From positions 1-64,000 of the forward strand of contig DF236952.1 of the NCBI GenBank assembly GCA_000708835.1: DNA of 64,000 bases, read 5' to 3'. Made by a program: the position numbers and the translations under genes. Of the stretch, positions 17,701-40,100 are shown one piece after another. The first letter of the stretch is position 1. Each line of letters starts with the position of its first letter. Source of the stretch: Klebsormidium nitens (taxonomy: Eukaryota; Plantae; Klebsormidiophyceae). The notes below the pieces were generated by a model. That model had not been told where the DNA came from. It searched no databases and worked only from the letters and a program-made list of their open reading frames with translations.

Positions 17701-20700
17701 AATTTACAGATCCTCCCAACGGTGGGGATCACTGTTGAGCACAAATTCGAGGCTTCTATCAGAACCGGTAGCAGGAGCTCGAGCCATCGAAGTCCGTCGT
17801 GTACTTCTTTACGTGTCGGCGTCGAAAATCTTCATCGATTCAAAAGCGTCCTTACCGCTGCAGTCAATCTCGCACATAATCAACGCTCGAGACGATCGTT
17901 CCGCTAGGACCGGTCCTCCCACCTGTATCTTCTCCCGGCACTCCGTGGTTGCCCCGAAGCGGATGGCCACCTTGAGCAGCCGCATGAGGTGGCGGCTCTC
18001 GGCCGCCTCGCCGCCCTCCCGGCGCAGCGGCGGCAGCAGGTCCACCAGGGTTTGCAGAGTTTTGGAGGCCTCGTAGCACAGCTCCTTGGTGATCTCGCCC
18101 TCGTCCGTGTGCAGCGGCAGCCACTTCTTGCCGTACTCCTCGATGAGACGGCCCGCGACGGGGCCCGGGACGCCGTGCGCGCGCAGGCCCTCGACCATCT
18201 GGGGGCAGAGTGGGGCAGTGCTAACAGATATTTCTCAAGAAAGATAATAGTAAGCTAAGTTAATAACAAGCTCCGACTACACTAAAAAAAACCTAGCCCA
18301 AAATCCTGCTCCGTCACCCGTACCCACTCTAACCATCAAACTAACCCTAGCAGTTTGAGTGCGGTTGCCTTGTTATCACCTCGACTTAATAGTATCTTTA
18401 TTGAGTTCAATTGTGAAGAGGACGTACGTAACGGAAAGTGGGCTCCGCAGTCTAGTAAATTGTAAGCAAGGTAAAAGGTATGAGAAACTCGAATTGGGGA
18501 CTCCTCGAACATCTATTGTTCTAAGCAAAAGGTCTCTGACGCTCTGCAGATACTTGAAATCAAACGGTTTCTGTGCGATTCTGCGCGCCTCAGACAGCGT
18601 TAACGTTTTTCTGATTGAGTCCAGTATGTGGTACAAGGCAGCCAGGAACAGTGTTTCAACGTGCAAGAACACAATGGAAATGAACAGAGCATGGGGACTC
18701 GCTAACAAAGACGGTTATAATGCCCACCTTGGAAAACATGACAAGCCCCAAGCTGATGATTGACTCCGTGTCGAGGGGGCTCATTTCACCTGAGGGAGCA
18801 GGACACCAGTGTAATGGGCGATTTCTAAATAAAAGTGTCTGCGATCCGAAACGGCTTGATATACAATCCATCTTGCAAGGCGTCCACGAAGCGTCTGTTT
18901 GCCAGGCCATTTTCTAAAAACGTTTGCCGCAACTCCTCTCGAGCAAGTCCTGCTGGTGCTCCCTACTTCTCGCCGTCATCTGAACCATCATCCATAACAA
19001 AAAGGCTCCCCAAGTTTGCAGTTGTTCCATCTGCATCGAAAACGAATCACTCTGACTCGTCTACTTAGCAGGGGCAGCACCATGCAGAATCGCTTCTTAC
19101 GTCAGCGTGACGTCATATTACTATACAAAACTCCTTACCGCCGGCCCCAAGCTTCTCAACGGTGGCCCCCGCCACCGCCTCGACGCACCGCTTCACGATC
19201 CCCAGCTCTTCGGCCAGCGGCATCAGCGCCTCGCAGCTGCGCGTCACCGCCATCGCGTCGCCGACGCTCGCGAGCATCTGCTCCAGCTTCCGGTCCGCGT
19301 AGTCCGCGAGGGTTCTCGCACCGCCCTGCAATTCAGAGGGTTTCGCCCGAGTGAACATGGAGCCGAGGTTGCTGTCAAGACTGTCCGCAGGGGCTCATAC
19401 CGCCTCGCAAGCCATCTTTCGTCCAGCCTGGACTAGCGAATTGAGGAAGCCCGGCGCTTCCTGTCGCACTTTGCTGTCAAAAGGACATTACGAACATTGA
19501 TCGCTGACCTCCTTTGAGGAATTTCTTACGTGGGGAGAGGGGGGGAAAAGAAAATTGTTCTTTCCCTATTTTGAGAGGATGCAGCCAGAAGCGATCCCAA
19601 TCGGGATCTTTTCAGCGACTTAATTATCCTCATTCTAACCAGACTGGAAAGGCACAACTGAACAGGGAGAAGTGACACCTGCAGCGAGTGGGAGGCTTCG
19701 TCCATACGGAGGAACGCCGCGGCGCACCGGACGGCTGCCACGTTGTCCGGCGTGAGGCGGACGTCCAACCCATAGCAGAAGTTCGCCACCACCAGAAAGG
19801 CGGGGAGTCCCCCCGGAAGGTCATCGAGACTGCAATCAGAGGTTAACGTACCGTCAGAAATCACCTGGTTGATGAATGGTCCAATGCCCGTGTGCGATGG
19901 TTACCCGTTACCTGTAAGCTTTGGTTGGCTGCACCTAGTTGGGGAGATTGTCTTGGGAAGCGATGGGGAAGGCAGATTGTGATCTCAGTAGGGATTCAAG
20001 GGTCTGTCGTGAGCCGACAGGATTACCGAAGCAGATCTAGCATTTCAAGTCTTATGATGGAAAGAGAAGAAGGAAGGGGAACTCATCCACTGGAACGAGA
20101 TGCCGAGCGGCCACACCAACAGATTGAATGACTGAAGCCTGCACTCTTCTTGCAGAGCAAGTGTAGAACCCTGAACAGGAGCTTGAAGACTTTACCAAGT
20201 CTGCGGTTATCAAAGATTCCTATCGGACAAAATTTGCAACAGCCTTTGAACGATGGAGTCTTCATGCATAGTCGTAATGATTAAAATATGTACTCTTGTC
20301 CAATCAGGATTCCGAGAGTATCATAGCTGGTCTGACTGGAAATCAAACGGAGAAGCAAAAATTCCAAACAAACCTTCATGCAATGAGGTCCCCAAAGACA
20401 CCCTCCTAGGTAGCAGTATGTTCGCTCAAATGCTGACTAGCAATGCAAAATTGTAATTTCATGATGAGACAATTACAAATTTAAGTGGTCGTTCAGGAAA
20501 AACAGCAGATATCAAAATCATCGACTGCGGTTGGTGGTCCTGGCTGACAGTAGCTCAAGATGGAAGCCATTTACGTTTCTGGCCCTATTTGCTGCATCAG
20601 GAGCGCACCCATTTTGATTGACACACTGTGACTCATTTCTTGCTGCGAACATCCTTTTCAGTTTCCTTTACCTGACGAAGGTCTGCCCTGAATGCTTGTC

Positions 20701-20901
20701 AATTTCCGCGATCTCCGCAAACTTGCTCGACCTTGAGTAAAGAGGGAATCTGTGGAGGTGCAACCCCGCCTCCGCAATATTCACAATCAGATCGCTAGGC
20801 ATGCCAGCGGTCTTGAGCCATAACGCCTCCAAGCCATCCGGAACTAGGTTGTGTGCCGCAAATTTTAGGGGCAGATGCAGCACTGATGTAGCCATCTCCA
20901 T
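14774..20901 (-). CDS. NRL: BTB/POZ-NPH3 domain (NPH3/RPT2-like, NRL) protein with C-terminal coiled coil (about 9 exons)
   Basis: BTB: GMPSDLIVNIAEAGLHLHRFPLYSRS (~20673-20901) and DDLPGGLPAFLVVANFCYGLDVRLTPDNVAAVRCAAAFLRM (~19679-19828). Then AEELGIVKRCVEAVA (~19117-19327). NPH3 domain: LRAVATLIDGYL (~17276-17470) and RASHDELFHAM..CETINPAKLS (~16643-16900). Coiled coil: REENQ|ALQTELVSLRMAYEELEQ. Stop TAG at 14774-14776. The start codon is uncertain. Confidence 0.9.
15298..15530. repeat. 57-bp intronic direct duplication (15298-15354 / 15474-15530)
   Basis: Gap-free alignment of tgctct..ggtgaagggc..gggaccgtttc.aaaga.tgcactgaccca in the last NRL intron. A three-unit tttgc(t)ctatgaa tandem lies alongside at ~15266-15310. 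Confidence 0.8.
18245..18350 (-). repeat. Short dispersed intronic repeat, copy 2 (inverted)
   Basis: The reverse complement reads ttagagtgggtacgggtgacggagcagg...ggagctt...agcttact, inside an NRL intron. Confidence 0.6.
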
Positions 20902-22620: not shown

Positions 22621-25600
22621 TCAAAAACCCGGTCGCAAGTCCTCCCCACCTCGAATGAAAGCCAGCAGGTTGTTTGCTAGACCTCGACTATGCGTGTTGA
22701 CAAACCTCCTCGTTGCAGCCGCACCCGCTGCATGCACAGAGCAGAACTCAGACTACAAGCAGAGAGGCAAAGCAGCTGAAAGCAAGCTATTTGAAAGAAT
22801 CTGTAAAAAACCTCTTAAGCGTGTGTAAGCAGAAACGTTCCAACGCCAGGAAAGAGGCAGCAAACAACCAGCTGCATAAGATCGCAAGCTGTACTTCTGC
22901 AGATTTGTGACCTTTTTGGAGCACGCTGATAGTGCAGACTGCCTGTGCTCAATCGTCACCGACCAGGCTCCTGCTCGCACATACCTGATCTGCTGGGCGC
23001 GAGCACGTACAAATCTGGACACTTTTTCCAGTTCCTCTGCAAGCACAAACCATCCATGTCATGCCAGCGAACATGCTCGACGTTGTACTGTCTCCAGGGC
23101 TCAATGAACCATTCAGTGGATATGTGGACCCGACGTGCAAGCAAGATAGCGCGCTCTCGAGGGGCCTAACGGTTAGCAACCCGGTTCTTCTAATTGGCCA
23201 AGGGGTAAGACCGAAGAAGCATACACAGGGCGACCTAATCCAGCAGTAGAATGATAACCTGAGGAGCAGGACTCACAAACTCGTATGCTGTCAGGTTGAC
23301 GGCGGCGCAGTAAACGTGGAATATCAATAATGGCACCTGCAAAGGTGGTCACTGGCTCAGCACTTATCAACCTTCGTCTGCGCAGGTTGAAAACCTCTTG
23401 ACTCTTCATCTCCTTTACCTTTCAAAGACACCATGGTTCCTGTCGACAGATGCAAGCACTGCAGTAAGATATAAACCTGGCGAGCCCCATTCGGTTGCTC
23501 AATACTGAAAGGCGGCCGTGATAAGCACCAACAGCGCTTCTGCTTTCAGCATCCGAATCTACCAGCGCTTCCGGGCATACTAGCTCTTGCGAGAAAAAGT
23601 CGAAGGCGTTTGAATCGATAAACATACCTGCCATAGTAGCTGTATTCGTGCAAAAAATGAGATCGAGGACACCCAGGGATGCTTGCCGACGATCAGCAAC
23701 GACACCAGGATCATCCTTTCGATGTTTGCTAGCGTCTCGCCTGCACGGAGCGAACGGCCAGATCAGCACAAGTTCTGATGATCAGTCTCTGTGAGACTTC
23801 TGACCAGCAAGGAGCGAAAGCTGAAAGTGACGCAAAAGCGGAGGCCTTTCCGTGATCATTTGGATCGCGCAACTGCTCAGCAGTCTGGTTTCTAAGCAAA
23901 CCAATCTGTGGTCTTTACTTTCCTGTGGAGCGGGACTTTGCAGAGGGAAAAGGCGCTTCGCAGACCGCTTCGACGATTTTTTCTGGTTGGAAGCACTTTC
24001 GTTTTCAGCGGCAATCTGACAAAGTTCGTTGCTATCCAAGCGAAGCTCCGTCGCCGCCTTGCTCCTACAACGTATCAACGCTCGGGAAGGGTCTGTGCTT
24101 GGGCACGACCGGCTAAGGGCGGAGTACGGTCCTGTTCTGAGCATGTGCGTCGACTCACTTTCTGAGACCAGCGTCAGTTCCTCTGGCAGCTCCAGAGACC
24201 CACGCCGATCAAAGACTGCGGAAAAGCAGTGAGTCACGCGTTAGCGGTTTCGTGCTGTTCACGGATTACCGAGAAGGGGACAAAAGGGGGGTCCAATAAA
24301 TCCAAACGGGATCGAAGCAGACAAAGGACGCGGCAATGATCTCGTCCTGAACCCTTGATTCCTGAACTTCGTGAAGAATGATGATCGTAGGTCTGACCGA
24401 AAGTAGACAGGACCACGTTCCTCGCGAAATACACGAGATGCCTGGTGATCGAGCGGTGTGGCAAGATGCGGGAAGTACGGACAAAGTCTTCCGAATGCAG
24501 CAAAGCACACAGAGAGTCAAGGTGATTGCAAGACAAATTGAAAGAAGCAACTTACACTGTACTGCTGCTTCGTCTAGAAAATACTCCGCTAGGATGAACA
24601 GGAGAAGCATGACTACGAAAAGAAAGTGGTTTCTTTGGCCTGCAGAGTAAAAATCGGTAGTATCAGGACCAAGCGCAATTTATAGAACCTCAATCGGTGA
24701 TCTAAAAGCGGACTCCTCCGAGAACGGAGTCCTCCCAGAACAACAGCTGTTATAAAATTGGACTCTATAGAAAGCAGGAGGGCTGAGCCGGAGACGACGA
24801 CACTCGTTCCCGAGGCGAAGGCTGCTTCCCAGCGCAGAACGCACATTTTGCGCTTATTGCAGAAGTCTCACCGGACAATAGACCTACCACCGGACAATAG
24901 ACCTACCAAACCGGTTTGCTAAAAGCCGGCAGCAATCGTCAAAGCTACAGGACAGCTAGCGCGGCGACCCCTCACCTACGCAGTTGTTGACCGCAGAGCA
25001 GTGGTGGTGGAACTTTTCTATACATACGTCACAGACGGGGCAGTGCTTTGAGCGGGGCGGTTTCGCAGCCTGCAAACACATATCAGGCATTGCGAAAGCC
25101 GTCGGTCCAAGCAGGCAATTGAAAATATGTAGAAATCGAGTGCTCGGCTTCTCGGGGGGGGATCCTTCACAGTCCTTTTCTGATACTAGCCGGCAAACTC
25201 CTCTGTAAAGAAGAAGGAAGGCTTCAGGAGATTCCAAGCGAGACGGGAAAGGGATCAAGGCCACTCTTCACGGCGACGGAAACCCCCTTGGCCATAACAA
25301 CTCCGAAAAGCAGTCCAGTATGAACCCAAGCTGGCAGCCTCAAATATCAACTCCCTGGAGTGGTGAGCGCACAGAGCCGTTGCAATCAGCCGTTCGAACA
25401 CCAGCCACTAATGCCATAATTTAAACAAGGATGTTGAAGCAGTGACACAGAAGATCCTGTGTCACTGATGTTGACAAATGATCGGTCCCTTAGTGCAAAC
25501 ACCTGAGTCTGTACCGCATCATCATGCTTCAAAGTCCTTCAGAAGCTGAAACATCGACGAGCTCGTTTGAAAGCACCCACCTTGCAAATATGGCAGTAGG

Positions 25601-27857: not shown

Positions 27858-28101
27858 TCTCCCACATTACCCAAGATGATTTATCCGGAGCGCTCCTGTA
27901 ACATCAAAACGGAGTCTTTGTGTCTGTCTGTATGTAGGCGACCACAATGCCTCACCGCATCGAATGTTACTTCTCAGACTCCCAATGCAGAAGCCTGAGA
28001 AGGCCCGGCAGAAGGGCACTACTCATAGTCGCACATATTATTATATGCATATTGGAACGACATTTCCTACCCTCCCTTTGCATCCCTTCTTCTGCTTCCT
28101 C

Positions 28102-28110
28102 AAACCCTAA
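28102..28110 (+). promoter_or_regulatory. Telo-box AAACCCTAA in the S-acyltransferase/thioredoxin divergent interval
   Basis: Exact motif between the two opposing start codons (27857 and 28452). A single short motif could be chance. Confidence 0.4.
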
Positions 28111-28451
28111 AATCACCTGACCTGGTGATCAATCTTCTAAGTTCTAGCTGATGCACCACTCATGCGTCATGTTCAAGCCCCCCCCTCAATTGAGACAGCA
28201 CGCCGCTTACCAGCCACTGGCAATACGAAGGTGCCGAATTGAGGGGCTTCTTGCTCACAAGGCAGTAGGCCAGGCCGAGCTCCCACCGGATATGTGGATA
28301 TAACGTACCCCCCACGGTAGAACACCACGGGATCCCGCAAAATTTTGCACGCCTAGTCACAGTGTAGGGAAAGGTAGCCCTAATTCCAGGTGCAGGATCA
28401 GTCATTTTGCCATTCTCAAAAGTCCGCTGATCAAGGCAGGAGGCGACCGCC

Positions 28452-30357
28452 ATGGTGAGCACTGAATCTGCATACGCACTGCAGTGGCAAGGTCCTTTGC
28501 TTGGACAAGGCTCGTTGATTGCAGAGCTTCCAGTCATTTGCTTCGAGTATCTTTGTATGGTCATATGCCTCTGCTTCGTCTTCTATTGCTGTGCTTATGC
28601 ACTTTCAATGTAAGCTGAAAACTCAACTTTGTCTATGAAAGGAACTAATCATCGACTTGCTTGTCATCTTCCTCTGCAAAACAGGTCTGCGTGGCGTGCT
28701 TGTACCCCCTTGTTATCCCTTTCGCGATCATGTTTCCGAGAATCTTCATTGGACTGTGGAACTTTATCCAGGTAAGAGTGGACCCATTCATAGCACCACC
28801 ATCTCATGCAGCTTGAGTCAGCAAATTGAGCAAACGGGGTTCAGACGGATCCACTGGCAGTAAGATGATGTGCCAGTGGGCAGAGTGAAACTTGGAAATT
28901 TCCTTGTAGAAAGTAGGGTCTCGAAGATAGAGCAATGAAGCAGTCTGTCCTGGTCGCAAAAAGTCTGATTGTGCTGCGTTCATTGAGAGGCCTTGCCTCT
29001 GTGCGTATGGATCACTCTCTAACCTTGTCACTCAGAAAGTACCAAATTGTTGCAAACGTTTGATTCTAAACATGGAGATTAGCACAAGCGGACAGGGGCA
29101 GGGGCAGTCAAAGCATAACATTGGGGGGCTGTGGTTGATTTCAATTGTTTACAAGCTCGCTGCACTCACTTCTGTGAACCACCCCAAGAAGAGCTTCAAT
29201 GCATCTGCACAATGCTTCAATGCTTCAATGACAAAGTGTTATGTTTCTGTGATGCAGCACTTTTTTGCCTCCTTGTTTGGTTATGACCTGCCGGCAGCTG
29301 AGACAGAGGTCAGATCATCATCCTGCTCAAAATCCTCACATTGAGAGTTGATCAGGGGCCACGTATCTTTATTGTGTGAACCCGCCACGACTTGCAATTC
29401 TTTCAATCATGCAAACATGCTACACCTCAAGTCTCTTGTATTTGTGACGTTGAAGGTTGCATATTAGTTTATTTGTGACGTTGAAGGTTGCATATTTGTT
29501 TAGCACTGGCCACCGCAGTGATGCAGAGAAACGTTGTTGCACACGTTGCAATTGTAGGTATCGTCCTATGGACCAGTTTCCCGCATTGGCCTTTTGTTGA
29601 GGGTCTACGCTGTCCTAGTTTTGGGATTTTGCTGATCCATTCCTGTCGAGCAGGTTCAAGACCACGGGCGCGTGGAAGAAATCCGATCAAAGTTTGAGTG
29701 GGACAGCAAACTTAGAAGTGCTGGGACAACGCCGGTGGTCGTCGACTTCACAGCATCTTGGTGCGGGCCCTGTAAAACAATAGGTGAGTGTGCTTCAGCT
29801 TCAGATGACGTGAATCTTGGTGGTCTTCCTGCATCTGTGTCTTCCAATCGACCAACGCAAGTCCCTGCCAGCTGGCTGCACCACGTCATACCCTTGTTCC
29901 GTGAGCGATGTTTTGAGGGCTGAAGCTCAAAGTTTCTTGCACCTTGTCCATTTCCACCCTCTGTCTACCACAGTATCTCAAACTGGCCTTGCTCCTCAAT
30001 CGCCTACAGTACTCGCTGACTCCATTGTTGGTTTTGACGGTCAGAAGAAAGTTGTTCCCGTTAGTGACTTCCGGTTTAATCTGCCGTTGTTTGATGGGAA
30101 AATGAAAGCTTCAACCAGAGCCTAACGTGCCTGGGCCCCCTCTCCATCCAGCACCGACGTATTACGCGCTCTCTTCCAAGTACGAGCATGTCAAGTTTTT
30201 GAAAGTGGATGTTGACAAAGTGCCGGAGGTGGCAGAAGAAGCGGGGGTGCGCTCTATGCCCACATTTCACATCTACAAAGGGGGTAAGAAGGTTGATGGA
30301 ATGGTGGGGGCAATGAAGTTTCAACTAGAAGCAATGGTCAAGCGGTGTGCATATTAG
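28452..30357 (+). CDS. TRX: Thioredoxin (WCGPC) with N-terminal hydrophobic MVCxxC extension (UPF0729/C18orf32-like); 5 coding exons
   Basis: Exons 28452-28454 (ATG|gtgag, context accgccATG), 28685-28771, 29258-29308, 29654-29783 and 30152-30357 are all GT-AG and phase-compatible. They give MVCVACLYPLVIPFAIMFPRIFIGLWNFIQHFFASLFGYDLPAAETEVQDHGRVEEIRSKFEWDSKLRSAGTTPVVVDFTASWCGPCKTIAPTYYALSSKYEHVKFLKVDVDKVPEVAEEAGVRSMPTFHIYKGGKKVDGMVGAMKFQLEAMVKRCAY. The Trx domain is certain; the N-terminal exons are my reconstruction. Confidence 0.9.
29439..29500. repeat. 31-bp tandem duplication (thioredoxin intron)
   Basis: tatttgtgacgttgaaggttgcatatt(a/t)gtt x2. Confidence 0.95.
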
Positions 30358-32050
30358 TACAGGGAGTCGAGTACGGCATGTTGGTTTGACCTGCTTACCT
30401 GCATACAGAAGGGCTTTTGTGCCCCTATAGAAAACGGGTGGAGCGTGAATTACATTGCTTTGGATTGATTCGTCAGTTGTAGATTGCGCAAAGGCCTTGT
30501 CACTCAAGATCAAGCCTGATTGCGCACTGTGATATGCATAACTTTCGCAGCAAGATACTTTGTAAATGCTCGATGTCCTGATCCCTTCAAGGGAGTGTGT
30601 CCCAACTTGCATTGAGTTGTACGTACAAGTAGGCTCGAGTGGTGGGCTTGGGACCGCGGTCGTAATCAAGTATAGGCAGTCAAGGTGATCACGAAGCGGG
30701 TGAGAGTGAACGTCTCTACTAATGCCTTGCAGGCTTGTTGACTCATCAGGAATTTGCGTGTTGCAACATTACAAATTTATCATGATTAATGTGTGCCCCT
30801 AAACTTCATTTAGAGGCATTCAAATCAAGCCTAGAACTTCCATGGAGGGTAGCATGCGTAATACAGGCATTGCACATTCAATCACAAGTCAAATGAACTG
30901 CCGCAATTCAATTTTGAAACTTCGCTCGTATGCGATTAATATTGGTGTGAATGAACCGTAGCACAGTGGCCGCAAAACATCTGGCTAGCTCCGCTGTCCA
31001 TGGTCAGAACCATGTGGCATAAGTCACTTGCGCCGGTCAATGCAATTCGTCGAATAAATATACATCCAATTTCGAACATGTACAAGCCCTCCAACGAGCG
31101 TGATTGGACTACATGTGGTCACCCATGCTGAGCGGCTACACTAATGGTTGCGCTACGTGCGTATAATGCCAGCTATAAAAATCTACCTATGCAGCTATAG
31201 GCCGCGCTAGGTATGTCACAGTATGAGCACCCTTACTGTGCGAGTTGACGCCAGTGTTGGCAGATTTTACACAGCTTGCTCGAATCAAAATAGTCAAAAG
31301 TACCCCGGTAAATGAAGGAGTATACAGCTATTATCAACCTCGGTCACATTTTGTCTAAACATTGCAATCGTGGATATATCGTCACTGAATATGGCGGATC
31401 ACACCTGGACAAGTATTCGGAATCCCTGCATATGCATACACGTTTTCGCTTGATCTAGAAAGCGTCCAGAATTGCATGCCATTCCTTGTAGACACAATCC
31501 ACCACAAGCATGAGAAGAACTGTACACGAAGATCGAAATTGTACGCGAGGATTGAAAAGGAAGGTGTCTACAGATGACATCGCCAGAAGTCAACATCAGG
31601 AAACCAATATCAAGCCTGCTATCTGCGATCCAAGTTAGCGCCAATAAACTAAACACTCACAATCTGAGAAGTCTACCCTTGATGGTTGCCAGACCACACC
31701 TGCAAGATGAAACAACCTGACATTTGTAAACAATGGAGCAGGTTGTGTAAGAATCAATCCAGTGGGCATTTACAATGTCAGCGTCAACCCCTAATCAGAC
31801 AACTGCAAGCAGTCAAAGACAGGTCAGCCCCGACAACTCAATGGGTTCACCCCTCCAGGCAGGACAGATTGGTACTGAGCTTTACTCTCAGCAAAGGTAG
31901 GCCAGACTATTGATCAGTCAACAATCTGGATGGAACTTTGCTAGCTTCACCATGAACAAACCACTTGAAGGAATTCAATGCGTCTAACCGATAGACTAAC
32001 GAACCCGTGAACAGACGCAATGCGCCAGTGAGTACTAATCTGCAGTGGTA

Positions 32051-34169: not shown

Positions 34170-37100
34170 CTATGCAAGAAGCGTTGAGCAAGCTCTGGCA
34201 ATTTCGTCTCGTAAGTTGTCCACGGGCCCATGTTCCGGGGTCCAAACGCCAGGGTTCAGATACACTCCGGAGTTCGCGAGCAAAGACTGAGCGGCTGGTC
34301 GGCCGTACATGCGTGCGTAAAGTGTTAGATACTCATAATCCTGCACAGAAAGGAAGCAGTGTCTCAGCAGAACTCCTTTCTTCGAGGACCTTTTGACAAG
34401 GGTCTGCTATGTGGTAGAACTTGGTTGAAAGTGAAAGGTGTGTGCTCTGATAGGGGGGCGGAATGAGTAACGCGTTCAAGCCTCGGCTACGTAGTCGTCC
34501 ATGGAACAACCGGCAAGGGCGAATCCCAATACCGGGCAGTAGATCGGGCGTCTAGTCGGTTACCCGAAGGTTTTGGTTGGACCAGGATCCAAATTATAGC
34601 ACGAGGAAATGGGAAGGCGTGCCCAAAGCTTTTGGACCTGTATGCTTCTTGTCATCGCAAGTATGCGCCAAGATGATTGATAGATTCAAGGGTGGAGCAC
34701 CCTCGTCGCGCCACTGGTCATCAAGCTGCTTCCACGTCCGTTTCGGATTCTCGACCGAAGGCAGTCTTCACTGCTCGTCAAGGAAGACAACGCACCGTAG
34801 AAGCAAGCACGGAATGTTGCAAACCTCCGCTCCCTTTCCAGAGACTGGAAGCATTCTTTCGTGCAGATATTGCTTAGATGATGACAATACACAAGAGTCT
34901 GTTGAACCAAAACGAGACCTCGCAATAGGGGAGCCTAAAGAGGCAGATGACGGAAAGAGCAAGGCCAAGACGCCAAGGTCCGTTGACAAACGAACAGGTT
35001 TGCACTTTTTACCTGCATTCCACTAAGGAAGCGCTCAAGGCGACACGAAGCGACGGGTTCGGTGTTCTCAGGGGAGAAAGCCTGGCCCGGATAGAAGAGA
35101 ACGCCATCGCCGAAAGGCAGCCCCGGCCGGAAGCGGATCTGCGGACGCAGAAATGACAGGAAGGTTCAGCCGGGAGGAAGGACACGGTTGACTCCCAACT
35201 GGGTGAGGCGAGTTTTGACACGGGGGCGAAGGCAGGGGTGTAAGAAATCTGTGCTAAGAGGGTTGAGAAAATGGATATGAGACGGGCTAGGCAGGTCGGC
35301 GAGAGGTTCCAAAGCGCAAGTCTCCCAATCTCTGCGCGTTGACAGATAGGCGGTCCAAAGCGCTGCAACAATCACCAGGCTGAAGTTTTGCTGTATTGGA
35401 TCGTCATGGCGAAGGCAGCGCTTAAGCTCAATCGTTGCTCAACTCAGAACCAACACCGCAGGGAGTGACCAGTAGAAACTTGAGACCCAATACTGCGTGA
35501 GTGATAAGCACGGAAAGTCACGCTTCCGACATCGACTTCCAACCCCCGAGCAGCAATCTGGACGAGTCTTCGTTTACCGCCTCACATGTCAGCAGCGTCA
35601 CTTGAGTGAATTGCACTCAACAAAGAGCTTCAATCTCACCTCGGCGGAGGGCGCGCGCGCCTTGTCGTAGCAGTTGGTGCCCCAGTAGAGGAACCCGGTT
35701 CCCCCCTCCTTCCAGACCCGCCAGAGGACGGCCCGCTGCTGGGTGCCGCGCATGCCCAAATGCAGGTTGGGCTGCGGGTCGCCGGGACCCATGCACACGT
35801 ACGACCACCACTGCTGGCGGGAGAGAGGGCACAGCTCAGGACTCTTAGGGGACTTTTCAGGTGTGTTGACAGAATGTCTTTCAAGGTGATCCATAAGCAG
35901 ACTGGAAAGTGTTTCCCAGACGTTGCAAGCTCAGCATGTTGCGGGCGACTGGTTGGGCTGCGGGTCGCCGGGGCGCATGCACACGTGCGACCACCACTCC
36001 TGACGGGAAAATACGCAAAGCTCAGCAATTGAGGCCTTTTTCTCGAGTACTTCTTGAGATGTCTTCCAAAGTAATTCACCAATGCGTATGAAAAGTTGGA
36101 GCCTTTGTCTCTTTTACGCTGCAACGCTCAGCATGTCGCGGGCGACTGGCCCACGATGTTCCGCAGTGGCAGTTCATGACCGACAGCGGCTCGAGAATGC
36201 TTGGCCGGCGAACTGCACGGGTGGCGGGGACTGCGTAGGCAGACCTTCTCGCTCCCCGAATTTTGACAGTCGATGAGAGAAGGTGACGGTCCCTAGGAAA
36301 TAGCAGGCACACCAACGGAAGGCTCCTCAAAACAGCAGAGGATTCTGCATTAATTCCTTTTAGACCGACTGAAACAGTAAGCCCCTGGTTTTATCCCTTC
36401 CTCCTGAACACAACAATCCGAGCGCAGCGCCGACATCACTTGTTTTATCTCGCCCTGCACTGACCCTCGCCACGCCCAATGTCAAGAGATAGAAGAAAAA
36501 GACGAAGCTTCCTGGCAAGCTTGCAAAAGCCTTGGATGTAAGTCCCTGCATAGCCTTAAGCGTAATCAATTCTGAACCTACCTCTCCCTCCTCCGCCCGG
36601 ACTTTTGCCCCCATCGCCTCCGCCGCATCCTCGCGCCCCGCCAATGCCCACTGGCTGACGCAGTGCACCTGACGAAAAGCATACGCATGTCACGGTTGCA
36701 CCAATTCCAAACCCGTCACGATATTGCAGCCAAATTCGAAAGAAGTCGGTGTTTCCAGTCGGCCGGAGATTTCAAACAGTATGAGACACACACTGTAGCA
36801 GATTCTACACCAAATGACTTCAATAGGCAGCACAGCTCGGACGAAACGGGTTGAAGATTGACATGCCTGCTGAAAGAATCAAGACCTTCGACAACCCCGC
36901 TTATATTGAAAACGACGAAAAAGACCACAAATAAAATGAACCTGGCAGTGGGGCCGCAGCATCTCCGGGACGCTCAGCAGGCTGTCGATGGTCTGCGGGC
37001 CGACCGCGCCGTCGCGTGCGCCCGAGTAGTAGGTCGTAAGCACGCGCGCGCCGGGCGCGGCCGCGTGGATTTCGGCCGCCATCTCGCGGATGCGCGCGTG

Positions 37101-40100
37101 CTGCACGGACGTGGTGGGCTCGTCCCACAGGTAGCTGCGGGGAGTGACGTCAGCGTCGGTAAGAACAACGACGGCAAGTGACGCAAACGTTGGTACGAAC
37201 AACGCCGGAGAGTTGCATGAATGTGGGACGCGATGATACGAGGACGAGCAAATAAGAGTTTGTTTCCTGATTGACCTTTGCCGGGAGGTCATTTTCGTCG
37301 TTTGTGTGATAGTAGACTACGATGAATTCACAATTTGAATGCCCAAATTCACGTACAGATGAGGCACTAAGATGGAAAAATCAGGACATGATAATGTGGC
37401 TTGAGTCAAAACCAACCGATACCTGGAGGGGCGCTAAAAATGCAATCGACTTTTGACAATCACATCAGCCGAAAGGCACATCAGCCGAAGGGAGCAAGGA
37501 TGCTTTTGCGACGAGGGGTGCTCACAAGTACGCCTTCTTGAAGTGCGGTCGGTCCTTGAGCGCCCCCAGCAACTTCAGCAGCGCTTCCTTGCCCTCCACC
37601 GGGTAGCCGCGGGCGTCCATTCCGGCGTACGGCAGGGCGTATGCGGACAACCGGGGGTCCGAATAGTACGCCTCCGCTCGAGGGTGATCGACTGGAGGCA
37701 CACGAATAGGATGTATCGGATTCAAGACTATGTCTAAAACAATGCCAGAAGGATTCCATTTCCCCTTCCAAGCTGCGAGAATGGAGACGCCCTGTGAAAA
37801 CGTTCTCGTAGCCGTTGAATCACCACATTGACGACCCTGCTTACAGTGGCGGCCATCAGCCCATAGCGGCGGCCATCAAATCAAACGAGGGCCCACATGC
37901 ATCAAAGTCCTGCTACCTGATAAGTGAGACCCCGGATAGTCGCACCTTTTTCTACTGCGAGCACATTCAGAATGCCAAATTGTCGATCATAATAATTGAC
38001 AAAGTAATATCGACCCGAAATGCAGGTTCTTCTGACCTGGCCAGGGGCACGTGTACGTGTAGACCTGCATCTCCCGCTCCCAGCGGCAGAAGTAGGGGCT
38101 GACCCGGAACGGCAGCAGCCACTGGAAATGCGCGTCGAGCGCCGCGCACCAATCGTCCGTCCCCCGGGATAGCTACAGACGCCAAGCAAGAAATTGGTGT
38201 TCAAGTTCTCGGGTGACCGAGATTATCAAACGGTCAGTTTCGCCGTCGCCTTGGGTGGAACAGCTGCGATTGATAAGCTTACCCGAACTGGCTCGCAAGC
38301 CTGGTTATGGTCCCGATAGGTATCAGAGCTTTTAGGGCTAGGTCACACGCAAATCGGCTGTAGATCGAACAAATGACAGCGTTCCGGCCCAGCTGGGAAT
38401 CGTGACATCCACCGGCCCGGAGCACGACCCTACTTGCTCTCTGCTTGCAGTTCTTATGTTGAAAGTACGTGACGGAGGGCAAGAAGAGCCGAATCCGGCG
38501 TGAAAAGCTTCCGAAGAGGACGAACGGAAAAGAATCACAGAAAGATTCATAATGGAAAAGGAATAATGACGTCGGCTTGCCTGGAAGCGGTCTTCGATCA
38601 CGCTGTCGCTGACACCCATGACAGCTGGCAGGCTAGGAGTGGTCGGAAGGACGAAGTCCCACACGACGATCGAGATGGGCAAGCGGATGCTCTGCGAAGA
38701 GCGCGGGCCGTCGGGGGGCGGGTGGGCGTGCCCGTTGGTGAGGGGTTTGAGGGTGTTAACGGGCTCGGATTTGGGGGTGTGAACGGGCTCCGATTGGCGG
38801 AGTAATGTGCGCAGGCGGCGCTCGACGGAGTGCAGTTCCTGCGGAGAAGGAGAGGTTTGGGGTCTAGGCTCTATCATAGGATTCTGAAAAGCTCGACTAA
38901 GAGACGGAAGTGCAACGTCCGGAAAGCCGAGAAGAGTGCTTAGGTTGGCCCGGCAACGGTGTTCAATAAGCAAAGAAAGTGATCAGAAACCCAGTTAATC
39001 GGTACAGTCCTGTCTGGAAGCGTTCACTGTTTTCAACCCAACTAAAGCGGACAAGACGGTTTGCACTTTGATGACTCATGGGTACTCTGGAAGGATCTTC
39101 CTGTCTCAAATTTCGCTTCGCCATATGTGAAGCTGCTTGAAGATTATTAAGCTCTCCCCTGCAAACAATGTTCAGTGCAGCTGACGAAAGCAACCGTGGC
39201 CCTTTCAACCACCCTGACGTGAGGGGCTGGGTCTTCAGTTCAGCTTAATAGACCCCTTGTGGCGACTCAAGGCAAAGAACAGCTTTCGCTTCCGCAGCCT
39301 GATGGAAAAAACTGCTGTCGAGCTCGACCTCAGGGCCAGAAGAAGTCGGCGAGCAATTCTTGCTCCGCCAGACCCCACGGACAACCGACCGGGGAGTCCG
39401 GCTCTCGCACTAGTTGACCAGGACTTTTCAGTGGTCAAGCAAACTCGGGCTGAGTTCACAGCCTGCTCACCTGACGGTCCGAAGCATCTTCACCAGTCGC
39501 CAGTCGTTGCCCCAACTCGTCGACAATTTCGCAAAGCCCGTCTCGAAGGGAGTCCGCGCGGCCGTTAACTTCCATCGGCTCTGACCTGGGGGAGTTGCCA
39601 AAGCAGAATCAGCATGCAGCTCAGCCATCATGCAGCAAAACCCCAATCTTCCACTGGATTCAGCAAGACGCGCTCCGAGGTTCGAAGGAAGTGGTGACAG
39701 ACTTCGTATACGTTTGAGAGACTTTTTTCCATGATCTCGATGGTCATGAAAGTCCACATAGAAGAGTTTTGCGTTGACAAAACTGCTTAGATTAGTATTC
39801 ACTGTCAGTATCTCGGTGTCTGACAGCTTTACAGCTTGAAGAACACCTTGGAACGCATCTTCAAAATACTTGAGCAAAGCTGGGATAATTTTGAGCAGAA
39901 TTTGGGCAGGTCGTTGGAACGTTGGCACAGATCTTAGTAAGGGGAAACCCAGATGCGTTGACAAAGCATGGCACCAACGTAAACCGTGTTTTTGGACATG
40001 AGATTTTTCCTCATTCTCGACGTCCTCACCCAGTATCATCAACAACAGGCTCAACCACCACCTCCCCTTCGTAAACGCCTGGACTCAGTCCGGAGGGAAC

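Follow-up and report, generated by a model that had tools for sequence, protein, structure and literature searches.

A cytosolic-type thioredoxin with a conserved Cys/Pro-rich hydrophobic head, a probable membrane tether, in Klebsormidium nitens

Membrane-tethered thioredoxins (Trx) are already known in two kinds, those attached by lipid modification, as in the plant Trx h9 type, and those of lumenal, TMX-like design. In the animal TMX1-4, chloroplast HCF164 and bacterial TlpA/ResA proteins, which belong to other Trx subfamilies, the Trx domain lies in the lumen or the periplasm. The Arabidopsis protein Trx h2 has been located in microsomes (PMC8147087). Here we describe a gene of Klebsormidium nitens, found in a 64,000-nucleotide stretch of genomic DNA (contig DF236952.1 of GenBank assembly GCA_000708835.1, positions 1 to 64,000; hereafter the window), in which a short hydrophobic N-terminal segment, referred to below as the head, is joined to a WCGPC thioredoxin. 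The gene is confirmed to be a real, well expressed, five-exon gene coding for a headed thioredoxin of 158 residues. Its product is best read as a membrane-tethered thioredoxin that would face the cytosol, a reading to which we give a probability of roughly 70%.

All positions are window coordinates unless another sequence is named. Exons were read from the region 28000-31000 and the predicted exons were joined in silico, which gave a spliced coding sequence of 477 nt (158 codons) in which all introns are of the GT..AG type and the first three junctions are in phase 0 (Table 1). Transcript evidence was taken from contigs of four public RNA runs, from four studies, that share exon-sized stretches with the locus and were placed on 27900-30900. 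These contigs omit precisely 28455-28684, 28772-29257, 29309-29653 and 29784-30151. The initial annotation, made from the letters alone, had proposed that an ATG-only exon and two further small exons splice in phase onto the Trx exons, and the spliced contigs confirm it: all three predicted junctions were found exactly, 28771/29258 and 29308/29654 in each of the four runs and 28454/28685 in two of them (X15 and X19), while a third (X12) carries a 9-letter loose end on exon 2, GACCGCCAT, that equals the bases immediately before and into the ATG. The N-terminal residues given in that annotation are those of the spliced product, letter for letter. The fourth junction, 29783/30152, is likewise present in four of four runs; the end of exon 4 at 29783 and the start of exon 5 at 30152 are newly fixed here, and their joining yields WCGPCKTIAP. 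One contig of 1170 nt (record 11 of X15) spans 28218-30816 with all four joints.

Intronic contigs were found only at low depth (3-5, versus 43-271). Among the contigs of the four runs we saw no exon skipping, including of the hydrophobic exons, and no alternative first exon from which the Trx part would be transcribed, either of which would have spoken against the proposed fusion, though contigs can lose rare forms. The start codon lies in a strong context (gaccgccATGg). Upstream of it, the 5' untranslated region (UTR) holds a single further ATG, which opens a three-codon upstream open reading frame (MWI-stop, 28292-28303) out of frame with the main one; the longest contig (X15) includes it, whereas the X19 contig begins only after it. 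Two repeats were observed within introns, namely a direct tandem duplication of ~31 bp in intron 3 (tttgtgacgttgaaggttgcatat.., 29441-29500) and a short caatgcttcaatgcttcaatg repeat in intron 2 (29211-29230).

The spliced product is identical to GAQ77723.1 (KFL_000030040; UniProt A0A1Y1HIN4) of K. nitens, so this gene model was already public and the fusion is not a hidden one, as had been supposed. A search anchored on the Trx exon led to a 158-residue EukProt protein of Klebsormidium subtile, of which GAQ77723.1 is a cluster mate. The product of KFL_000030040 carries the public names "hypothetical protein" or "Thioredoxin domain-containing protein". Literature searches with the gene identifiers, At5g03460 and Klebsormidium thioredoxin returned nothing relevant, and we found no paper on the headed thioredoxins of Klebsormidium, of Albugo or of environmental sequences described below, for which public records say only "hypothetical" or "thioredoxin".

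The joining of an MVCxxC hydrophobic head to a WCGPC thioredoxin is real and expressed, and it is also conserved. The segment MVCVACLYPLVIP, which comprises the MVCxxC start and the Pro-kinked hydrophobic patch, is present in three Klebsormidium species. The K. subtile orthologue, known from a transcriptome, has 158 residues and is 94% identical, with four substitutions in residues 1-47. All five exons, among them the ATG with gtgagcac directly behind it, recur on a 37.6-kb metagenome contig (L001) of a Klebsormidium-like alga that is less closely related; there the head exon is 4 codons shorter, the SLFGYDL exon is retained, and the introns are of other lengths and poorly alignable. Between K. 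nitens and L001, the ratio of nonsynonymous to synonymous substitution (dN/dS, Nei-Gojobori) is 0.08 in the head and 0.06 in the Trx domain, with dS ~1.4. Purifying selection thus acts on the head as it does on the Trx domain, and this conservation marks the head as a part of the protein kept by selection and not as UTR noise.

By its sequence, the catalytic domain (residues ~54-158) is a normal cytosolic thioredoxin of the h type/Trx1 type. Pfam PF00085 matches residues 60-154 with E 8.5e-28 and 96.8 bits, against a gathering cut-off of 23.5. The active site W83-C84-G85-P86-C87, the buried Asp D78 (VVDF) and the cis-Pro motif M126-P127-T128-F129 are invariant in an alignment of 30 sequences, and AlphaFold predicts the standard beta-alpha Trx fold with a predicted local distance difference test score (pLDDT) of 95-98. 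The closest solved structures are those of Chlamydomonas Trx h1 (1ep7/6i19, E ~3e-30) and human Trx1. The protein has five cysteines, C3, C6, C84, C87 and C156, the last within the C-terminus KRCAY and replaced by Tyr in L001.

The head is a 39-residue hydrophobic stretch that runs from MVCVAC to SLFGY and is followed by the acidic linker DLPAAETEVQDHG. Residues 1-19 make up a uniformly hydrophobic patch (mean Kyte-Doolittle value 2.16) that carries C3 and C6 together with P9, P13 and P19. Residues 21-39 (mean 1.2) read as an aromatic amphipathic helix after Arg20, with an aromatic and a polar face, and residues 40-53 as a flexible acidic linker. The hydrophobic moment rises from 0.1 in the patch to 0.45-0.49 in segments that start at residues 16-19 (span ~16-36). 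Aromatic residues account for 10 of the N-terminal 40, and Arg20, C-terminal of the hydrophobic patch, is the sole charge before residue 40. AlphaFold, on the 30-sequence alignment, models a single helix (residues 5-37) and then a low-confidence linker.

Most probably the head inserts into an endomembrane, serving there either as a monotopic wedge or as a short anchor of the N-out kind. Cysteines near the N-terminus and next to a hydrophobic patch are a typical setting for S-acylation, and S-acylation at C3/C6 may reinforce the insertion. The Trx domain would face the cytosol and would be reducible there by NADPH-thioredoxin reductase, so that disulfide-reducing power would be concentrated on membrane-proximal targets. 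Membrane binding, topology, S-acylation, the choice of membrane and the targets are what we infer in this scheme. For the topology, the argument comes from the positive-inside rule: in the K. nitens protein and in all of its analogues, basic residues (here Arg20) are found C-terminal of the hydrophobic stretch and not before it, which would leave the Trx domain in the cytosol.

A protein that is hydrophobic from residue 2 could also be thought to begin with a signal peptide or a type II signal anchor, which would deliver the Trx domain to the ER (endoplasmic reticulum) lumen, the secretory pathway or the extracellular space; the animal TMX proteins and the secreted NaTrxh of Nicotiana are examples of the lumenal or secreted kind. 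Among h-type thioredoxins, some with an N-terminal extension are indeed secreted or microsomal (PMC4065587, PMC8147087). We nevertheless find this quite improbable here. A basic n-region is lacking: no charge precedes Arg20, and in the analogues, too, basic residues come after the hydrophobic stretch. The hydrophobic region itself, at 39 residues, is long and rich in proline, and it shows no evident small-residue cleavage motif. In addition, the Trx domain belongs to the cytosolic clade and has no extra disulfides, and the 158-residue protein contains neither N-glycosylation sequons nor an ER-retention tail.

Some observations weigh against a cytosol-facing membrane anchor, or leave its details loose. 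With three prolines among its first 19 residues, the head is doubtful as a classical transmembrane helix, and AlphaFold confidence in the head is only moderate (63-85). A crude Hessa-scale sum did not separate the heads from control anchors and was not used. The compartment may be the ER, the lipid droplet, the plasma membrane or the outer membrane of an organelle, and S-acylation is a guess from the position of the cysteines.

The initial annotation had taken the head for a member of the UPF0729/DUF4512 family, whose human representative is C18orf32, and had read the fusion as a Rosetta-stone clue that UPF0729 proteins are redox partners or substrates of thioredoxin. C18ORF32 is anchored to lipid droplets by a hydrophobic patch (residues 7-15) and an aromatic amphipathic region (residues 18-37) (PMC12797721). 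The Klebsormidium head resembles it in its N-terminal MVCxxC, in its Pro-kinked hydrophobic patch followed by an aromatic amphipathic helix, which together reproduce the bipartite layout of that anchor, and in a short YPLVxPF match. We used as comparator 45 residues of the human C18orf32 N-terminus, which were accepted only after Pfam had returned DUF4512 for them; as a control they score 58.1 bits (E 1.5e-15) against PF14975, over profile positions 1-43 of 103, and their residues Y16, F19, Y23 and Y25 agree with the published description (PMC12797721). The heads of K. nitens, K. subtile, Albugo, the environmental protein P0018 and the metagenome loci L004-L006 gave no PF14975 match at E<=10. 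Alignment of the head alignments to the human N-terminus with hhalign reached probabilities of 4.2% and 2.4% over 7-9 columns, pairing only LYPLVIPFA with IYPLVSPFV. Smith-Waterman comparison with shuffled sequences selected the same residues, along a best path of MVCxxC, a 17-residue gap and YPLVxPF (K. nitens z 2.9, p ~0.013; L001 z 5.2), and that path requires deletion of exactly the patch called essential in lipid-droplet anchoring (PMC12797721). By the same comparison the Albugo and metagenome heads have no similarity to the human sequence.

Among proteins of 26-82 residues, a word-indexed homologue search with the 47-residue head turned up no candidate. When residues 1-50 were searched exhaustively with phmmer against 1.84 billion representatives, the only returns were three repeat-derived junk proteins, with no DUF4512 protein among them; this search could miss fusions that sit in plain-Trx clusters, since the Klebsormidium protein itself was not returned. 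Feature searches of the ESM Atlas with three heads gave no usable match, and the head alignment, run as a profile against the PDB, matched no entry at E<=10.

The assignment of the head to UPF0729 is therefore not supported: the profile similarity on which the initial annotation had itself made the label depend was not detected, and what the two share is a motif-level likeness and a similar design, though a closer plant relative may exist. C18orf32 is, moreover, a stand-alone protein of ~76 residues without a catalytic domain, whereas the Klebsormidium protein has 158 residues and a Trx domain. That the head is a diverged UPF0729/C18orf32 module, which would make the protein a lipid-droplet or ER thioredoxin and tie UPF0729 to thiol redox, is on this evidence unlikely. 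As the head has no demonstrable UPF0729 membership, the Rosetta-stone suggestion is also left unsupported, and these tests do not support a functional clue for human C18orf32. From the proposal of a membrane- or lipid-droplet-anchored thioredoxin with two CxxC pairs, both pairs (C3/C6 and C84/C87) are real and a membrane anchor is the best reading, while the kinship of the head to UPF0729 did not stand.

The same architecture was found in other eukaryotes. A full-length search returned two proteins that aligned over 95% of the query, CCI43937.1 of the oomycete Albugo candida (176 residues, starting MTTFCIGPVCVP...) and the environmental protein P0018 (starting MIICIGPFCIP...), and in both the BLASTP alignment extends through the heads. 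The Albugo gene (CAIX01000058.1, L003:3001-3748) also opens with a micro-exon, ATGACGACG, followed by gtaagg before the CIGP exon, and its linker intron lies a few residues from the place of the Klebsormidium intron, at a position that is not identical. When metagenomes were scanned with the Klebsormidium head, none of 102 patterns passed tblastn; a scan with P0018, by head motif only, gave five loci (L004-L008). A Trx domain lies downstream of the head in all five, in the same frame in four, and stand-alone head genes numbered zero. In L008 the reading frame shifts directly behind the head, unlike in L006 and L007, and this shift may reflect either allelic variation or a mistake in assembly. 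Outside Klebsormidium, headed thioredoxins are thus known from Albugo and six environmental contigs (~four distinct genes), with heads of the form M..CIGPxC[IV]P.

The Klebsormidium protein and the CIGPxC[IV]P group share, in the same order, a Cys/Pro hydrophobic patch, an amphipathic aromatic/basic helix, a variable linker and a Trx domain; they differ in that Klebsormidium has CLYP and CxxC (C3, C6) where the group has CIGP and CxxxxC. In an alignment of seven heads C6, P9, P13 and P19 are invariant, and their spacing, C-x2-P-x3-P-x5-P, which was chosen post hoc, occurs in 0.05% of shuffles. Pairwise head similarity measured against shuffles was highest for Albugo (z 5.2-5.7), followed by P0018 (3.2-4.9), L006 (3.7-4.3) and L004/L005 (1.3-1.9), with unrelated Trx anchors at ~0. 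With a group hidden Markov model built without Klebsormidium, the Klebsormidium head scored no better than 7-50% of shuffles (p 0.07-0.5). In Trx trees, P0018 and L004 fall inside plant Trx h and Albugo falls with oomycete double-Trx proteins, while Klebsormidium stands apart; monophyly of the headed Trx domains was marginally rejected (approximately unbiased test, p 0.026), for a short domain, with L005 on a long branch and with a group named after the first tree. With pairwise similarity in favour of a relationship and the model and the Trx trees not, the evidence is mixed, and a kinship between the heads of Klebsormidium and those of the CIGPxC[IV]P group is only suggestive, with shared descent and convergence about equally likely; in either case the architecture is common to both.

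A wider idea is that the Klebsormidium head, the CIGPxC[IV]P heads and the N-terminus of UPF0729/C18orf32 descend from one ancient eukaryotic Cys-Pro module for insertion into membranes or lipid droplets. We hold this to be distinctly unlikely. If it were true, the recurrent fusion to thioredoxin, together with the promoter-sharing with a DHHC gene in Klebsormidium described below, would imply that the cysteines of the module are under redox or acylation control, and the uncharacterised UPF0729 family would gain a testable biochemical context.

Other anchored thioredoxins of the Trx1/h type (P0014, P0053/P0100/P0108 and P0092) were seen to carry unrelated anchoring solutions. Members of the environmental P0053 family (187-202 residues; clusters of 36 and 10 members) have a different, internal N-terminal helix, and a thioredoxin of Cavostelium apophysatum has an N-terminal helix with a weak SelK_SelG match (E 0.068). 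A chytrid (Geranomyces) thioredoxin has a C-terminal tail anchor, and plant relatives have MGxC lipidation motifs. Membrane tethering of cytosolic-type thioredoxins evidently arose repeatedly.

Table 1. Exons of the headed thioredoxin gene, neighbouring genes and metagenome loci with the same architecture. Positions are those of the window, except for the loci L004-L008, which are numbered on their own contigs.
Feature	Position	Strand	Evidence or remark
5' UTR (minimum extent)	28218..28451	+	X15 record 11 begins 28218; X19 record 13 begins 28306
Coding exon 1, ATG only, then donor gtgagc	28452..28454	+	Joint 28454/28685 in X15 and X19; loose end in X12; ATG/gtgagcac also in L001
Exon 2, residues 2-30, VCVACLYPLVIPFAIMFPRIFIGLWNFIQ, encoding the Cys/Pro-rich hydrophobic patch and the start of the amphipathic helix	28685..28771	+	RNA joints; kept in K. 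subtile and L001
Exon 3, residues 31-47, HFFASLFGYDLPAAETE, helix end and acidic linker	29258..29308	+	RNA joints; L001
Exon 4, N-terminal half of the Trx domain, WCGPC (Cys84, Cys87)	29654..29783	+	Pfam PF00085; RNA joints
Exon 5, C-terminal half of the Trx domain, cis-Pro MPTF, stop TAG 30355-30357	30152..30357	+	PF00085 E 3.2e-13; joint in four runs
3' UTR (extent from contigs)	30358..30816	+	Contig ends 30741-30816
DHHC-type S-acyltransferase gene, 518 residues	22621..27857	-	GenBank gene table (locus offset 20451)
NPH3-domain protein gene, upstream of the DHHC gene	about 20452-20901	-	GenBank gene table
GH123-type glycoside hydrolase gene, downstream of the Trx gene	34170-38357	-	GenBank gene table
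L004	1501-1965		Complete 155-residue WCGPC protein
L005	214-819		202 residues, linker ~80 residues, WCKPC
L006, L007, L008	L006:1492-, L007:1492-, L008:601-		One species; intron in the Trx part

The nearest neighbour of the Trx gene encodes a DHHC-type S-acyltransferase, whose DHHC box exon (24959-25264, minus strand; PF01529, E 2.1e-12) reads FHHHC, that is, HHHC instead of DHHC. The two genes stand head-to-head with start codons 594 bp apart. RNA contigs on the DHHC side end at 28177-28195 and the Trx contig starts at 28218, a gap of 25-40 bp, though contigs cannot fix ends; ends this close suggest that the two genes share a bidirectional promoter. The adjacency by itself is no evidence of a functional link. 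No DHHC gene lies within ~3 kb of the headed-Trx gene of Albugo, and the 1.1 kb of upstream flank in L001 has no similarity to the DHHC neighbour. The pairing is of interest because of C3 and C6, the two cysteines at the hydrophobic N-terminus of the head, and because there is a precedent in SELENOK, a membrane redox protein and cofactor of DHHC6 that stabilises the acyl-DHHC6 intermediate (PMC5789314).

The head could accordingly be imagined as a SELENOK-like transmembrane segment and the whole protein as a redox cofactor of the neighbouring DHHC enzyme, as SELENOK is for DHHC6. Besides the very short intergenic region common to the two genes, this would be favoured by PF10961 (SelK_SelG), the only profile that touches the head: on the K. 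nitens head it gives E 3.3e-4 and 21.6 bits over residues 18-43 (profile positions 21-46), and its scores of 21.6, 20.8 and 17-18 bits, the weaker last value being that of K. subtile, all stay below the gathering threshold of 23.3. The match covers the hydrophobic helix only, a classic source of false matches, and is missing from the Albugo and metagenome heads. SelK membership is not supported, the score being sub-threshold and the helix being followed by a linker and Trx, with no Gly/Pro-rich tail and no penultimate selenocysteine or cysteine at the C-terminus. Sub-threshold, confined to the helix, absent from the analogues and lacking the SelK tail, the PF10961 match is probably compositional. 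Head-to-head gene pairs are also common in compact genomes, and we consider a SELENOK-like role very improbable. Pairing with a DHHC-type acyltransferase still provides a concrete, testable hypothesis.

A membrane-tethered, cytosol-facing thioredoxin thus remains the best reading of the Klebsormidium protein. Were its head a real anchor, the protein would mark sites that need local disulfide reduction, and the head would offer a compact targeting peptide.

Compared with known systems, the Klebsormidium protein has the active site and fold of Chlamydomonas reinhardtii Trx h1 (1ep7, 6i19) and of human Trx1, which are soluble and headless, whereas the Klebsormidium protein is headed. With the Arabidopsis thioredoxins h2/h7/h8/h9, of the MGxC myristoyl/palmitoyl type, it shares a cytosolic-type WCGPC domain behind a short membrane-attaching extension, and MGxC-type relatives (P0037, P0047) are among its nearest Trx domains. 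In the plant proteins a hydrophilic extension is myristoylated at Gly2 and in some cases also palmitoylated at Cys; the Klebsormidium protein, in contrast, starts with Met-Val-Cys, has no Gly2 and carries a 39-residue hydrophobic/amphipathic extension encoded on its own phase-0 exons. Animal TMX1-4, chloroplast HCF164 and bacterial TlpA/ResA likewise tether a Trx fold by a hydrophobic segment, but the charge distribution and the domain type of the Klebsormidium protein point to the cytosol. What is new is a cytosolic-type thioredoxin behind a genetically encoded Cys/Pro/aromatic hydrophobic head, with a wider and previously undescribed distribution in eukaryotes.

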